Under the pieces are notes generated by a model. That model did not search any database and had not been told where the DNA came from. It worked only from the letters and a program-made list of their open reading frames with translations. Position numbers and translations under genes: made by a program. From the NCBI GenBank assembly GCA_904063045.1, contig CAJFCJ010000025.1:62001-126000 (forward strand): a stretch of 64,000 nucleotides of DNA, read 5' to 3'. This document shows, in pieces, positions 43,367 to 52,800 of this stretch; the first letter of the stretch is position 1; each line of letters opens with the position of its first letter. Source of the stretch: Dimorphilus gyrociliatus. Its lineage: Eukaryota; Animalia; Annelida.

Positions 43367-46300
43367 ATGATCTTGACGGAAAAAAATGTTCTACTTTTGT
43401 ATCGACTATGTCTAACTCTTTCTTTAGCACAAGGTAAGTAATACAAGTATTCTTTTATGTCGCGTATGCGGAACAAAGAAATTTATAATAGTTCTCTATT
43501 TATACTATTCTTTAATATAATCTAATAAGAAATAATATTGAGATTTACAGTATTTCCAGTTTTGATATCTAATCTGTATACATATCTTATAGCATTTCTT
43601 AATAATCGTTTAATATGTATTTTCAGTTGGCATAGGCGTCCACCGATATATAAAAGTTACTACAGTATTGGAACATCGTTTTGAAAACATCACGTTTTCT
43701 ATAGTTGAAAGGATTGGATTTAACATTTCTTGCCATGCTAATGATGATATCTCTTCAAAGTTGTATAGGAATTCACCGACGCTAGTTAAAGTAGGATGTT
43801 CTTATGGAAGTGCATATATAGTAAGCAAAGACAACACATATGGTTCAAAATTGCCAAATATCTCCGTACCTGCATCATTCAATGAAGACACATTGATAAC
43901 AACATTTTATATTAAAGAAGATAGTCTAGAAAAGATTGAACGGGAAGTTGAATTATTTAACTCAACGATATCAGAGTGTTGGCTTCAATGCGAATTTTTT
44001 GACAAAAACTTACAAACCTACGGAAATACAGTTCATATTTTACCAATTCGTATGTATAATTTGATTATACACTATGTGAATACTCTTCGTGTGCATTTGT
44101 CCTAATTCATTTGTACTTTTCCTATACATAGGCCAACCGGTAATTGAAGATTGTTTCATAGAAGATTTCCAGAGGTTGGTTTGCAAATGGAATTCTGGAT
44201 TAGATAAGAAAGCACCGTATTTTAACCGTACTGAAATTGGATTTACTTACGGGTAACTATTTCTTTGTTTTTCTATATTTAGTTTATCTTCATAGATATG
44301 TATGCCACTAGTCCTGATCACTTACAAAAACAAGATAGGGGCTCAATTCGCAAAAATTTTTGCAAAGAAATAGAATGCTCAAAGTATAAAAAAGATACAT
44401 ATCTAAAAGGGAATGAACTGTGGTGGGGTAAAGCAGTATATTACGCAAGAAATTACTCGATATGCATCTGCATAAAGACAATCTACAACCAAGCGTTAAT
44501 TTATATTATACCAACGGAATATCCTGGTTCGATAACGTTTTAACTTTTGTCTTTTGTTATTTTCTACTAATAAGATATTCATTTTTTTAAATTTTAATCC
44601 ATCATCATATCAAAACACTAGACTATTTCGACTTACATACATAATTCTTTTTCTATATTTTACAAATCAGCTTAAGGTAGCAAAAAACACCAATTATTTT
44701 CAATACTATAAATAATCGTTTCTTTATTTTTTACTAATATTGAGTTTGAAATTAAATTAACAGTTTATACAGTAGTATCAAGTTTGATTGTGTCTTTTTT
44801 TTCTAGGCCATAAGATTGGAACATTTGATTTAACTAATGGTTTTTATACTTTATAACTCTTTCGCATTAACAGCTTTACAGAACCTTTTCCCGCTAAAAT
44901 ATTCGCATTCGACACCATTGAGAGTAAACTGTTCATTTGTGAATTGTTAAAGAACTCTCGCACTTGTATTGGTAATATAGTTGAGATGAATACCAGCGAT
45001 TTAGGTAGTTTCTTCAAAATAATAGCAAAATATTTCCTCCTAGCAAAGCTATCTTCACTTAACGGCAAAATAAAACAAATATACATATATTTAATGCTGC
45101 TATATGTATATTTGCAAACAATAAATAATCTACTTAACAACTATTTAAGCTAATGTCCAATTTATAAACAATTGTATATATGCTATAAATTCTATCCTAA
45201 TTTTTCAGCTACTCTTCCACTGTCAATCCACCATATGACATCAATTACTATAGAGATTCCTTTCTATCTGTATATTATTTCAAGGGTAGAAATATTTCGC
45301 AATCATTTGATTTACCCAGCCGATTTAAAAATCCGCAGTGGGCTAATTTCCCTGAAGGTAATAATAATCCCCGTTACAAAAACGTATTTTGCGAAAATTC
45401 TAATTGATTTTAATGCTGCTTCCAAATGTCGAAATTATTTTCTCAAGTCTTATTTCCCTTTTGAAATGTTATGTAGAATGATTTATATAATTATTATTTT
45501 TAATATATTGAAATTACTATAGAGAATTATACAAGTGCGGTTGCCAAATTGAAACTACAGAGATCCTTTATCAAGAAGGTCACTATTACTGTAAAGTTCC
45601 CTGTCAATATAAAAATCCAGGCAAAATGTGTCGGAACAACACACGTTTTCTCAACATATCTTTTAAAGAACGTGGTATACTTTTTTCTAGTTTGAATCAA
45701 GAAATGCATGCAGCCTTCCAATAAGTTTACTCTTTCAATTAAAGGATTTGTTATGTTTATTTATGCATCAAATTTTTAAAGACTATAAATAGCATGGGCT
45801 ACGTGATCTTTTCCATATAGAATTACTGTTTCTCTTTCTAAATGGTTTAAACGATTCAAAAGTGTTCCTTATTTCAACGCTTAACAAACGCTTCTTTTAA
45901 AACAGCTAATTTGCATTTTCCAACATCTAAACAAGTTAACACTAACTATATATATAATATTCTTATACAAGCTAAAACTCTTTTTATATTTATCTCCATA
46001 AAGTTGTTCCTGGAAAACCACAAATGAATATCACTGAGGGACAAACAGATGTTTTGCTCATGGTAAATGGATCTAAAGGAATACATTATTATTGTGCAAA
46101 TGACAATTGTACTGAAGAATACATGTACCCTAAAGTATATTTCAAAATAGTATGCGAACTAAGTCAAAATTCTGTTGTTTTGGTAAAAAAAAACAATCAT
46201 TTATTATCTTCTTACATCATTCGTTTAATAATCATCTCTTTCGAACAGAAAAGAGAATCAAGGAATTATATTATAGGAGGCCAGCCTCAAAGAAGTTTTC

Positions 46301-47545
46301 GTTTCTCGAACTTGTTACCATATAGACAGTACAGTGTAAAATTGTATATGATACTTTATGATAAGGACTTCCGACAGAAAATAGGACAAAATGGTACAGC
46401 TCTTATTCAGAATTTTACAACAAGACAAGCAGGTGATACTTTTACTTTTCTATTTTTTATATTGCTTTCTCTTTTTTCAAAATGCTTTTTTTTAGTCTTT
46501 TTATACATTAATCCTATGTTTATAGAACCATCCGCATTACCTGAAATTCCTCCAGGAGCGTTCATTTTAGATTCTGATAGAAGGCATCTAACAATTTTGT
46601 GGAAACCTCTTCCCATTCCATTCCGAAATGGACCAATTGCACAATATTCTCTTCAAATTTCTTCTGAAAAATCTATGACCAATGTCTCTGGGGATGTAAA
46701 CTATTACAAATTTAAAAATCTAACTACAACAAATCCTTCTATAAAAGTGATTGGGTTTACGAAAACACAACAAATATCTCCTCTTCTAAATAACTCTGAT
46801 CATCAATTTAACCTCTCAAAAGGTAAAATATTTCTCTTTATATTTGCAATTCTTAATCTATAAAGATGATTATTTCATAATTTAGTTTCGTATGATAAAG
46901 AAAAAAGCTGCTTCTCTGTTAATAAAACTTCGAATGGAAATCGAAAAATTGATTGGAAAATACCAGGCATTAAAGTTTCCAGATATGTAATTTATTATTG
47001 TATTGTCGAAGGACCCGAAGCTTTAATATCAGAAGGCTGTATAGTAAGCAATGACAGCGATTGGTATGGTCTCAAAACAATAATTGTATCGAATACAACA
47101 AATTTTCTTGTAATGAATGAATCTCTATTCATGGAAGATAAGATATACGATTTTGGAGTTTCTGGGGATAAATTCCTTAACGATAAATGGCATAGTACTG
47201 GATTAATACCATCAACCTGCCTTAATAGAACTCAATCAGACTATAAAGGTAAGTCACGAAATTGTTAGAGAAGAATTTCCATTGTTATTTTACGTCGTTT
47301 GTTATTGTATGCTTTAACAGTGGAAACGGCAGACCAATCTTCATATCTTTGGATTCTTACAATTTTTTTTATTATACCGATTGTAGGATTTGTACAATTT
47401 ATTAAAAGGTTTGTAAGCGTATTTCTTTTTTTATACAAGATATAGAATAAAAAACATGTATTTTCAATTTTGTAGGTTAACGAGAGAATTCAAGACAGAT
47501 CCGATGATGAAGGAGAATTTGGGCAAGCTGTTAGATAAAAATTAA
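43367..47545 (+). CDS. Domeless/gp130-like type I cytokine receptor A with a short (~23 aa) cytoplasmic tail
   Basis: Signal exon 43367-43433; Ig-like exon 43627-44049; CHR exon 44132-44252 (CFIEDFQRLVCKW); FN3 exons 46004-46134 and 46249-46432 (LLPYRQYSV); 46526-46822 (LTILWKPLPIPFRNGPIAQY); 46886-47248 (YVIYYC...C...W...YDFGVS...STGL..STC); TM exon 47321-47408; tail exon 47476-47545. Exons between 44312 and ~45700 are only partly resolved. Confidence 0.78.
46504..47528 (+). repeat. ~1.02 kb segmental duplicate, copy 1 (exons and introns of receptor A)
   Basis: Colinear with 49856-50880 at a constant 3352-bp offset with no indels. I count 6 substitutions in the first ~980 bp and ~7 more in the last ~45 bp. 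Confidence 0.97.
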
Positions 47546-48082
47546 AACGCCATTTTTTTTTATATCATTCAATCAATCAACTATTAGCCTCATTCGAAAT
47601 AATCTATATTCAAGCGAATTAAAGAAAAAATTGTAAATTTGTATTAGTATTGTAAAGACAATTGTTTATATGTACTATATTATATCTTGTTTATATGAGT
47701 TTACTCATTTTCTTAAATATTGTTTTGTTTTTCTATTGTTGATACTGTTTATAATGTTTTCTATTAGCGCAAAAGACGATTTCAAAATAGACCTTTGCGA
47801 TTAATTGGAACAAATAAAGTTATCTATTTTAATTATTCTTATGAAAAGGTTTTTTATTATATGGACGAAATGAGAATTTCCAAGCAATCGTATCGAAATA
47901 CATTCGGGTAGATACATTTTTATTTGCAATGTCCCTTAACGATTTCAGATTTTGTTTACGAGTTTCTATAGTATTATTTATTACAGCAGCTTGTTGTAAG
48001 CTTCGCAATACTTGAACAGATATTTTAATTGAATAGCTCTATTGAAAATGATTTTTGATAGAATACTTTCCAACTAAAGTTT

Positions 48083-48086
<4 letters not shown>

Positions 48087-48121
<35 letters not shown>
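48087..48121. repeat. (TA)n microsatellite upstream of receptor B
   Basis: Seen directly. Confidence 0.95.
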
Positions 48122-48124
<3 letters not shown>

Positions 48125-48215
48125 TGTTCATACATTTGCCAAATCATAGTCTAAGGACAAACTTAATAGACAAGAAACAAAAATAGATAATTTCGAAATG
48201 ATAACTTCATAATAA

Positions 48216-51026
48216 ATGTGTAAAGATAAAGGCATATTTAACGGTTATGTAATAACCTGGACTGTTTTTAATATACTTCAATACGGTAAGTACTCAAGTT
48301 TCTTTCAAATTATAACAAAATGTATTTCTATGTTTGTTTATGTAATTTGCGTTTTGTTTTTATTTGACAAATTACATTTTATTACACGATGTTATTTTGT
48401 TCCTTTAGGATGTTATTTGCAATTATCGAAAGGTTCAAAAATTTCGACTACCTTTCCAAACATCTTCTATAATTCATCAAATACTGTTATTGTATTAAAC
48501 GAATTCTTAGTATCCTGTTCAGAATACTCAACTGACAAACTAAACTTGAAATATTCAGTTGAAATTGTTATTGATTGTCCAACTAAATCTCTCTATCTAC
48601 AAGGAAACGATAACCTATATCCATTGTTTAGAAATGAGAGCCTATATATACAAACCATTGACAAAGGTTACACATCAACATTCCATGTTTCTCCAACTAA
48701 TTTAATTGCCATAAAATTACTATTAAATCAACAACTTGAATCGTTTCAATGTACAATTTATTGTCAAATGAATGATAGTAATGGATATTTATCAAAGGGA
48801 GAGATTTTTAAGATTCTACCTCTAGGTAAGTTGACAACACTGGTATATATATATTTCATTGAATTATTATATTGTCTTCCACGTCTTAATTAGGAATACC
48901 AAAATTAGAAAATTGTATATTAAACGATATGGTTTCAATTTATTGCTCTTGGAAATCAAATTTAGATAATACGTTAATACCAATGAAATTAAAGCAAGCT
49001 ATAATCGATAAGATTACAAGAGAAATTACGTAAATATTTCAAATATATTCAATATTCAATCCTTTATATTGTAATTTTACATATTTTATTTATAGTTGCG
49101 ATAGAGGTAATTTTGCATACGTACCTATTTTATCTACGCAAGATTTGCTCATTTGTAATTGGGAATATATGTCACAAATTGGCTATAATGCGATACGATG
49201 GAACCGAACACAAACTTTATTGATTGTTTACGATGGTAAAAAATTAATTACAACTCCAAGTTAGTTATCTAATATTCTTTTTATAGATAAAATGATTATT
49301 TAATTTTCCTTTTACAGTTCTTTTTCCACAACCTCAAATCGAATCTAACAAATATTGTATTAAAGAGTCAAGTAATAGTCTTACCCTATCAGTTGGTTTA
49401 GCTTTTAGTGAAGGAATAAACTTTATTTGCAAATTCTATCCAAAGATCGACCCACCGCAATTGGAATTTTATGCCATATCAATTCTAAAATCTCAATGGA
49501 ATACAGAGGTATTTATGCCTTGACCGCTTTTTTCTTTAAAATTTACTAACCGCTAATTTTTCATTGAATTAATAGTTTTTTATTGTTTTTTCTTTTTGTT
49601 TTCTTTCCTTTTGCTAACAAAGATTCATAAATTTCTCATGGTTTGTCCTCAATTTTGCGGCAACGAATCTTCACGAAACACTGCTCTATACTTTGAACAT
49701 AAAAATCTTCGCTATAATACGAATTATTCATCAATTATGTATTTCAAAACAAAATACTATCCAGGTGTCACTGAAAAATTCCTTACGAATTTGACAGCAA
49801 AGGAATTACACACAAGAATATCTGGTAATCATAATTCCTTTTATTCATACTTTTTTACATTAATCCTATGTTTATAGAACCATCCGCATTACCTGAAATT
49901 CCTCCAGGAGCGTTCATTTTAGATTCTGATAGAAGGCATCTAACAATTTTGTGGAAACCTCTTCCCATTCCATTCCGAAATGGACCAATTGCACAATATT
50001 CTCTTCAAATTTCTTCTGAAAAATCTATGACCAATGTCTCTGGGGATGTAAACTATTACAAATTTAAAAATCTAACTACAACAAATCCTTCTATAAAAGT
50101 GATTGGGTTTACGAAAACACAACAAATATCTCCTCTTCTAAATAACTCTGATCATCAATTTAACCTCTCAAAAGGTAAAATATTTCTCTTTATATTTGCA
50201 ATTCTTAATCTATAAAGATGATTATTTCATAATTTAGTTTCGTATGATAAAGAAAAAAGCTGCTTCTCTGTTAATAAAACTTCGAATGGAAATCGAAAAA
50301 TTGATTGGAAAATACCAGGCATTAAAGTTTCCAGATATGTAATTTATTATTGTATTGTCGAAGGACCCGAAGCTTTAACATCAAAAGGCTGTATAGTAAG
50401 CAATGACAGCGATTGGTATGGTCTCAAAACAATAATTGTATCGAATACAACAAATTTTCTTGTAATGAATGAATCGCTATTCATGGAAGATAAGATATAC
50501 GATTTTGGAGTTTCTGGGGATAAATTCCTTAACGATAAATGGCATAGTACTGGATTAATACCATCAACCTGCCTTAATAGAACTCAATCAGACTATAAAG
50601 GTAAGTCACGAAATTGTTAGAGAAGAATTTCCATTGTTATTTTACGTCATTTGTTATTGTATGCTTTAACAGTGGAAACGGCAGACCAACCTCCATATCT
50701 TTGGATTCTTACAATTTTTTTTATTATACCGATTGTAGGATTTGTACAATTTATTAAAAGGTTTGTAAGCGTATTTCTTTTTTTATACAAGATATAGAAT
50801 AAAAAACATGTATTTTCAATTTTGTAGGTTAACGAGAGAATACAAAACAGATCCGTTGATGCAGGAGAATTTGAGCAGGCTTGAAGAAAGAAATGCCTGT
50901 AGTATTCATAGTAAATATATATATATATACATATATTTATTTATATTAGATGTAAACCGCATGTGTTTACAGATCGACAGTCTGAGCATCTCATTGCAGA
51001 AAGTTGTGCACATGAAAATCATGTAA
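48216..51026 (+). CDS. Domeless/gp130-like type I cytokine receptor B (own N-terminus, C-terminal block shared with A), short tail
   Basis: Exons 48216-48285, 48409-48825, 48894-49029 (CILNDMVSIYCSW), 49096-49259, 49318-49508, 49623-49824, 49878-50174, 50238-50600, 50673-50760 (TM) and 50828 onward all have compatible phases with GT-AG junctions. The exact 3' end is uncertain (read-through stop at 51026, or further small exons). Confidence 0.8.
49856..50880 (+). repeat. ~1.02 kb segmental duplicate, copy 2 (exons and introns of receptor B)
   Basis: See 46504-47528. Confidence 0.97.
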
Positions 51027-51559: not shown

Positions 51560-52800
51560 TTATTCATTTTCAGTTTGTTCTGTGCTATTCTCTTTATTAT
51601 CCTCCTCGGAAAATGAACGCAACAATTTAACTCTTTGACGCACCTCTTCAACTCTTTTGTCCTGTAAATTATTTACACATTTAATAATAATTTAATCCAT
51701 GAAAAAATTAAAAATTTGCTTACATGATCACGTAGTTTATCCAACATTTGCTGAACCAAATTATTCTTATTCTGTAAAACTTCGTTCATCTTTAGAATCA
51801 TCTTTTCTTTTTTTTCCTGTTCAACGGATTGACTCGTTTCCAATACTTCTTGAACATGTTTTTCCTATTTATTAAGAAATAAAAGTAAATTAAATACATC
51901 TGCTTATTATTCAAACATTTATTAAGCTTATACTAAATTACGTACATGTTCCTTTAATCTATCCAACATATTTTTCATTTGGCTCTTTCGATTTTCATCA
52001 GAAACTTCCAATTTCTTTTCAATACGCTCCGCCAATTCTTTTGTGTATTTTTCGGATGCTTGTCGCACATCCTCAACTTTCTTTATCTAAACAAAAGCAA
52101 ATTGATACGGATTGCGTAATATTATCAGTAATTTTATCAATAAAGATAACAACTTACTCTCTCTCTTAGTTTGTTTTGTAGAGCTAATATTTGGGCATTT
52201 CTGTTTTCTTCCAGAGCGCCCATTTTTGCTTCCAATGTCCTTTGAGTTTCGGCTTGAAAAGAATTGTTCAACTCTTGAACCTTTTCTCTCGCCTCTTCTC
52301 CGCGTTCTTGTAATTTTTGAATTTTCTTCAATTTCTCAGCCTCAACGGATTTTCTTCTATCAGCAGCATCCAAAAGTTTCCTCTTGATCTCTTCCTGAGA
52401 CAAAGGTCGCGGAGAAGACTTTGGCGTCTTTCTAGGTCCATTCGGCGTAGCCGGTTTTAAAATAACCTCAAAGGCAATATTCTCTCCATTTTGACCTAAA
52501 AGAAGGAGAGAAATTATTAAATATTGAATTAAAAAAAAACAAAAAAAAATTTGTGAACAAAACTTTCGAGAAAACTTAAAAAAAACACAATTTTTTTAAA
52601 AACTTGACTATATTATCGCTTTAAACTTACTAGTCATAAAGCTAGTTACACATTTTTCATAAGAGAATACATCTATTTTTCAGAGAATATTGTTTACAGG
52701 TCGAATAACGTTCATTTTTTTTTTTCAACGTCAGATCCTATTTCAAGTTTTTGAATATTTCCTACTTACCATTTTTTTCATTCAATACGTTGGCTGCCAT
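51560..52800 (-). CDS. stathmin: Stathmin family protein with extra tubulin-binding repeats, ~250 aa
   Basis: Exons 52770-52800, 52158-52495 (IAFEVILKP...LSQEEIKRKLLDAADRRKS...ENRNAQ...KLRER), 51946-52086, 51724-51864 and 51560-51661 join in frame (753 nt). A possible 15-aa N-terminal extension uses 52902-52921 and 52801-52825. Confidence 0.9.

Follow-up and report, generated by a model that had tools for sequence, protein, structure and literature searches.

The window analysed here, a 64,000-nucleotide (nt) stretch of the 78 Mb genome of the annelid Dimorphilus gyrociliatus (contig CAJFCJ010000025.1, positions 62,001 to 126,000), is AT-rich (~30% GC) and contains two tandem cytokine-receptor-like genes, A then B, on the same strand (+). 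Both proteins share one layout: signal, immunoglobulin (Ig)-like domain, two-domain cytokine-binding-type module, FN3, FN3, transmembrane segment and short tail. An earlier note on this DNA had described two tandem type I proteins of the gp130/Domeless kind with divergent N-terminal halves of ligand-binding type and a near-identical half comprising the stalk and transmembrane segment, a description that the present analysis supports. This mosaic of old and young halves was probably produced by gene conversion between the neighbouring genes.

Searches with HMMER against 1.84 billion representative proteins recovered the public annotation of the locus: the left gene is DgyrCDS13370 (P0001), accompanied by its cluster mates DgyrCDS13368/13369 (P0006, P0007), and the right gene is DgyrCDS13372 (P0002). 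The annotated proteins P0007, P0006 and P0001 for A and P0002 for B were mapped back onto the window DNA, giving models whose introns are all GT-AG, with 10 exons in A and nine annotated exons in B (Table 1). The frame of B is open upstream of its annotated start, an internal methionine in the Ig exon, and the 5' exons of B were analysed exon by exon. The exons of the two genes are colinear, their sizes in A/B being 67/70, 423/417, 121/136, 131/164, 179/191, 184/202, 297/297 and 363/363 nt, followed by 88-92 nt in both and then the short tail exon. Intron phases are the same in A and B throughout, the candidate first exon of B included. The proposal that B has one FN3 domain fewer than A does not hold, as both genes have 10 exons of the same phases and similar sizes; the apparent surplus consists of open reading frames (ORFs) in the 621- and 999-nt introns of A.

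Table 1. Positions in the window of genes A and B, their exons, the two long introns of A and the shared rear tract (CHR, cytokine-receptor homology region)
Feature	Position	Strand	Description
Gene A	43367..47542	+	DgyrCDS13368/13369/13370; 10 exons; exact protein-to-DNA mapping
Gene A exon 1	43367-43433	+	Signal
Gene A exon 2	43627-44049	+	Ig-like
Gene A exons 3, 4	44132-44252, 44874-45004	+	CHR D1
Gene A exons 5, 6	46004-46182, 46249-46432	+	CHR D2
Gene A exons 7, 8	46526-46822, 46886-47248	+	FN3, FN3
Gene A exon 9	47321-47408 or 47412	+	Juxtamembrane and transmembrane
Gene A exon 10	47476-47542	+	Short tail
Gene A intron 3	44253..44873	+	621 nt, unique DNA; ORFs taken for CHR exons in the earlier note
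Gene A intron 4	45005..46003	+	999 nt, unique DNA; Cys-rich ORFs, in no annotated isoform
Gene B	48216..50884	+	DgyrCDS13372; 10 colinear exons; P0002 mapping plus 5' exons read from the sequence
Gene B exon 1	48216-48285	+	Candidate signal exon, unannotated; alternative in-frame ATG 48330
Gene B exon 2	48409-48825	+	Ig-like; annotated start is an internal Met at 48768
Gene B exons 3, 4	48894-49029, 49096-49259	+	CHR D1
Gene B exons 5, 6	49318-49508, 49623-49824	+	CHR D2
Gene B exons 7, 8	49878-50174, 50238-50600	+	FN3, FN3
Gene B exon 9	50673-50760 or 50764	+	Transmembrane
Gene B exon 10	50828-50881 plus stop codon	+	Tail
Homogenised tract, copy 1	46504..47480	+	Last 22 nt of intron 6, exons 7-9, introns 7-9, first 5 nt of exon 10
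Homogenised tract, copy 2	49856..50832	+	Offset 3352 nt, no indels
Intermediate zone, tail exon	47481..47542, matched to 50833-50894	+	82%, 11 mismatches/62 nt

The shared rear block and the diverged front halves

BLASTN aligned 46485-47542 with 49838-50894 as a direct repeat in one gapless alignment of 1058 nt (97.9% identity) at a constant offset of 3352 nt. Within this repeat, the block at 46504-47528 that had been reported as ~99% identical and free of insertions or deletions (indels) was confirmed, with 12 mismatches in 1025 nt (98.8%), half of them within the last 40 nt. The core of the block, 46504-47480 vs 49856-50832, carries six mismatches in 977 nt (99.4%) and opens with a perfect 523-nt run from 46504 to 47026; the bases that tell the copies apart stand at 47027, 47032, 47124, 47297, 47338 and 47341 and at the partner positions, B having C at 50379, 50690 and 50693, A at 50384 and G at 50476. 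This tract encodes the two FN3 domains and the transmembrane segment and includes the intervening introns and the start of the tail exon. At the 3352-nt offset, identity is 98-100% between 46500 and 47500 and 20-38% outside the block, the chance level for DNA of 30% GC.

The edges of the block are abrupt. On the left, identity climbs from chance to 99.4% over a few bases inside intron 6, 22 nt upstream of the exon-7 acceptor, and on the right similarity stops at the stop codons. The intermediate zone of the tail exon suggests an older layer of homology or an older conversion. The earlier note had placed the left breakpoint in an intron, which is correct, and had argued that this position kept both genes in frame; an intronic break is not needed for that, because homologous conversion preserves register wherever it ends.

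The core mismatches are distributed as one in 220 intronic nt and five in 757 exonic nt, of which four are replacements (I/T, E/K and two S/P) and one is silent. Since the introns of the tract are as identical as its exons and four of the five exonic differences change the protein, recency, and not purifying selection, explains the identity. A genome-wide look for further copies of the 1 kb block, which the earlier note had called for, returned exactly two; no third copy or donor was found anywhere in the 78 Mb, at the DNA or the protein level. (TA)n microsatellites lie at 48087-48131 and 50905-50945, the first 545 nt past copy A and the second starting ~15 nt past the right end of copy B. Simple repeats occur at conversion boundaries in the human fetal globin genes.

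Exons 1-6 of A and B share 19-40% amino-acid identity, exon by exon. Significant alignments were obtained for the Ig exons (23% identity, BLASTP E 7e-4, z = 7.0 against shuffled sequences) and for the D1a exons with their C-x3-D-x5-C-x-W and C-x10-C-x-W patterns (38-40% identity, E 5e-5, z = 6.5 against shuffled sequences), while the remaining upstream exons gave no significant A/B alignment, which bears out the view that the front halves share family-level features only. Third codon positions in the front halves are 35-51% identical vs a random expectation of 31%, and are thus near saturation. The front introns 1-6 are unalignable and have A/B lengths of 193/123, 82/68, 621/66, 999/58, 66/114 and 93/53 nt. 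Judged by these comparisons, exons 1-6 of A and B are homologous but anciently diverged. The low identity, near-random third positions and unalignable introns of the front halves indicate that the duplication that gave rise to A and B is old, and the age of the front halves in turn indicates that the identity of the rear halves is secondary.

Family placement and nearest relatives

A and B are divergent gp130/Domeless-type receptor-like proteins and not proven members of that family. The signal exon of A is hydrophobic, and both genes encode a 20-residue hydrophobic transmembrane segment followed by KR, as in type I topology. Exons 3-4 of each gene encode four cysteines with C-x10-C-x-W, the pattern of a first CHR domain. 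Neither W-S-x-W-S nor a close variant of it is present in exons 5-6 of A or B; the WSXWS motif of Domeless is likewise only degenerate.

The sole Pfam profile above threshold was fn3, with 34.3 bits on the shared FN3. None of the curated CHR and Ig profiles (IL6Ra-bind, LIFR_D4, Lep_receptor_Ig) passed, the best being LIFR_D4 on the first CHR domain of B (E 0.46, 11 bits vs a cut-off of 25), and in six-frame Pfam searches across the genome neither LIFR_D4 nor Lep_receptor_Ig yielded anything above the cut-off. The best sequence match in the PDB was LIFR (E 4.8e-4), with gp130 lower down, both on the shared FN3. In the ESM Atlas, the clusters closest to the whole of B and to residues 1-365, which are specific to A, were OSMR, LIFR, leptin receptor, IL-12R beta, a gp130 homologue, IL-27B, IL-12 p40 and CRLF1, with language-model feature scores of 0.91-0.93. 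The Atlas models, at a predicted local distance difference test (pLDDT) score of 0.58, align to cytokine receptor, OSMR, IL-12R beta 2 and gp130 clusters with template-modelling scores of 0.5-0.6. No orthologue was detectable outside this genome among the 1.84 billion representative proteins or by word-based search, and HMMER with 45976-46860 against the same representatives returned only A and B themselves and generic FN3 proteins. IL6R/gp130-like receptors have already been reported from molluscs (PMC13203501).

The apparent order of Ig-like domain, CHR, FN3 stalk and transmembrane segment is that of the vertebrate receptors gp130, LIFR, OSMR and IL-12R beta, with which A and B also share a four-cysteine first CHR domain containing C-x10-C-x-W, while their short tail resembles that of alpha chains such as IL-6R alpha and IL-11R alpha. 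Unlike the vertebrate gp130 family, A and B lack WSXWS as well as Box1 and Box2, and they have two stalk FN3 domains, compared with three in gp130 and none in the alpha chains. A second point of reference is provided by Drosophila domeless (dome) and eye transformer/latran (et/lat), adjacent duplicates of which one is long and one short, the short receptor modulating signalling (PMC4751595). Like these, A and B are adjacent duplicated invertebrate gp130-like receptors whose ectodomain combines a cytokine-binding module with FN3 domains. In contrast to the fly pair, A and B are both short-tailed (~20 residues) and have neither the LP motif to which Hop binds nor the tyrosine motifs retained in Et/Lat; they also have an N-terminal Ig-like domain and two stalk FN3 domains instead of three. 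No partial homogenisation of dome and et is reported in PMC4751595.

Origin of the mosaic

From the sequence comparisons it is probable that A and B are old tandem paralogues and that the 3' kilobase of one was recently overwritten by that of the other via interlocus (non-allelic) gene conversion. The two genes would belong to a branch of gp130/LIFR/Domeless-type class I cytokine-receptor-like proteins that is restricted to this lineage and evolves fast. Their six 5' exons would have escaped conversion and diverged close to saturation, and the latest overwrite was probably the last of several rounds of exchange, because the tail exon has an intermediate 82% layer. A recombinational origin had already been put forward in the earlier note; it is upheld by the tract introns and by synonymous sites that are as identical as replacement sites, but unequal crossover alone, one of the two routes named there, does not give this arrangement, and we infer conversion as the mechanism.

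The closest precedent is the mammalian pair of Toll-like receptor (TLR) genes TLR1/TLR6 (Kruithof et al. 2007, PMC2077338). There, independent conversions in nine species maintain identity in the last leucine-rich repeats (LRRs), in the transmembrane segment and in most of the TIR domain, but not in the N-terminal part that binds the ligand, which diverges. Conversion of this type leaves a sharply bounded tract next to a homologous but old remainder, and both were found at the present locus. Like TLR1 and TLR6, A and B are tandem paralogous type I receptors whose rear part is homogenised through the transmembrane segment to the start of the intracellular part and whose N-terminal part is divergent. 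They differ in being of the Ig/FN3 cytokine-receptor type, whereas TLRs are built from LRRs and TIR, and in a tract that spans three introns and begins inside one, whereas the TLR genes have a single coding exon; the TLR case is also supported by nine species and that of A and B by one genome. Paired immune receptors such as Siglec-11/16, Siglec-5/14, CEACAM and KLRC are likewise homogenised by gene conversion (PMC5701461, PMC3210942). They resemble A and B in that interlocus conversion is limited to one module of neighbouring receptor genes, but the polarity is opposite: the ligand-binding domain is kept identical and the transmembrane segment and tail differ.

The joining of a common rear module to divergent front modules had been taken for an undescribed mechanism, a claim that has to be withdrawn, since conversion restricted to the C-terminal part of tandem receptor paralogues is documented for TLR1/TLR6 (PMC2077338). 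Because that precedent has the same geometry, the A/B mosaic belongs to a known kind of event, the pair itself being a new case. The locus reveals no new mechanism of receptor diversification and is a further case of an already documented process. What it offers is a clear instance of partial concerted evolution, with sharp boundaries, between two cytokine-receptor-like genes of an invertebrate, together with two short-tailed additions to the expanded, fast-evolving gp130-like family of a miniature annelid. A practical consequence is that RNA-seq quantification and transcript assembly cannot separate the 3' halves of A and B.

Several points weigh against this reading of the locus. The tract shows no GC enrichment of the kind that GC-biased conversion can leave. 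The start of conversion requires high identity, so either the rear halves stayed similar since the duplication or the replacement was non-homologous. The existence of both copies rests on the internal consistency of one assembly. Expression of the two genes rests on annotation based on EVM/PASA only, with three isoforms for A and a 5'-truncated model for B; as the public B model begins at an internal methionine and no RNA-derived protein was found, expression of full-length B is unproven. Word-based searches with P0002 and with P0002:170-349, which holds the B-specific junction of exons 6 and 7, gave no RNA-derived or orthologous protein for B. Finally, the family placement rests on weak sequence scores and a moderate-confidence Atlas model, and AlphaFold2 run on P0002 without an alignment gave an unusable model (pLDDT 34). 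Full-length products are presumably expressed from both genes.

The main rival to conversion is segmental duplication or exon shuffling as one non-homologous copy-and-replace event: illegitimate recombination would have put 1.0 kb of one gene, from intron 6 to the stop codon, in place of the rear half of the other, without ongoing concerted evolution. The tract does have the look of a surviving shuffling event, with its left edge in an intron between symmetric phase 1-1 exons and its right edge at the coding end, and the front halves are far too diverged for homologous pairing today. Yet the register is perfect: indels are absent, and neither filler DNA nor duplicated sequence is seen at the junctions. 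Exon sizes in the replaced part match the colinear 10-exon plan exactly, and the graded 82% zone of the tail exon past the 99.4% core is not predicted by one clean paste. We regard such an event as unlikely, if not negligibly so.

It is more improbable still that the assembly placed one real block twice, by a haplotype join or a mis-resolved repeat, in which case one gene would in reality lack its rear half. Repeats of 1 kb that are almost identical are classic sites of such errors, and short-read polishing can make close paralogues look more alike. The assembly was built from PacBio long reads (PMC7854359), and the repeat spacing of 3.35 kb is well below the length of such reads, which span it. 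The copies differ at 12 positions, and their tails and 3' flanking DNA are distinct; each is surrounded by sequence found nowhere else and stands in frame behind a unique, colinear set of exons, and no indels separate them even in homopolymer runs.

A recent duplication of the whole gene, followed by very fast adaptive divergence of the front half and purifying selection on the rear, can be set aside as having hardly any probability: the ligand-binding parts of immune-type receptors can evolve very fast, and one colinear plan is common to front and rear halves, but the front introns and third positions are near random as well, intron lengths differ several-fold, and tract introns that are 99.5% identical beside four protein-changing differences out of five in the exons show that constraint is not what keeps the identity, so that silent-site and intron data contradict this explanation.

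Transcript variants, tails and neighbouring genes

The public models of both genes are incomplete: that of B has no 5' exons, intron 6 is kept in two of the three A isoforms, and the annotated tail frames of the two genes disagree. Two ways of starting B can be read from the DNA. A start at ATG 48216, followed by an in-frame intron of 123 nt without stop codons, yields a weak signal peptide, and the in-frame ATG at 48330 read directly into the Ig exon gives a much more hydrophobic one. Intron 6 of A (46433-46525; 93 nt) is in frame and stop-free and is kept in P0001 and P0007; if retained, it would lengthen the stretch from CHR D2 to the first stalk FN3 by ~31 hydrophobic residues. The introns of 621 and 999 nt in A stand out from the other introns of both genes, which measure 53-193 nt. 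They contain ORFs with compatible splice phases, one of them Cys-rich, which could be skipped or decayed exons. Candidate extra exons of A at 44312-44427, 45209-45365 and 45525-45674 are phase-compatible; they are absent from all annotated isoforms, and the colinear plan is complete without them, so they are unproven.

Exon 9 of both genes offers the same pair of 5' donors, GTTTGT and, 4 nt further on, GTAAGC (47405-47416; 50757-50768). The public model of A is spliced at the former and that of B at the latter, which results in two different tail frames, both of them open in both genes; only the GTAAGC frame gives A and B equal tails, acidic and ~20 residues long. When exons 9 and 10 are translated, the tails measure ~19-24 residues in either frame, except for that of B with the GTTTGT donor, which would continue for 65 residues across the (TA)n run as far as 51026. 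This tail frame is unlikely. The end of the pair had been set at 51026, which is right only for the GTTTGT donor of B; with the annotated GTAAGC donor the coding part of B ends at 50884. No Box1 proline motif, PxxP, YxxQ or STAT-type tyrosine motif occurs in any tail frame of A or B.

Each protein combines a full ectodomain with a tail too short to signal, as in short alpha-type or decoy receptors. Because the tails are short and without Box1, we infer that A and B are non-signalling chains, either ligand-binding (alpha-type) or decoys, that would need a long-tailed partner. A convergent stathmin-family gene on the minus strand (51931-52403; Pfam Stathmin, 69 bits) bounds B downstream, which leaves little room for further tail exons. 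For TLR1/TLR6 the authors invoked co-evolution with shared partners, divergence being limited where those bind (PMC2077338). By analogy, the identical stalk and transmembrane module might be kept the same by selection, with both short receptors docking one shared long-tailed signalling chain as TLR1 and TLR6 do with TLR2, but we consider this unlikely. If true, it would amount to a modular alpha-chain system in a spiralian, in which different cytokine-like ligands feed into one transducer and conversion prevents the two docking modules from drifting apart. The interchangeable dimerisation surfaces proposed in the earlier note are speculative.

Another receptor-like gene, which extends beyond the left edge of the window, has its last exons at 722-1459; they encode a transmembrane helix and, after it, a tail exon of no fewer than 170 residues. 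Exons of this gene further upstream (L022, L023) showed no significant similarity to the exons of A and B. Elsewhere in the genome, a candidate JAK gene is found at G000:C7:1268480-1272300. In it, an exon of 351 residues matches JAK-type FERM_F1 weakly (20-22 bits), and two tandem tyrosine-kinase domains come next, the first weak and the second strong; the gene sits between a dynein heavy-chain gene and a cortactin-like gene.

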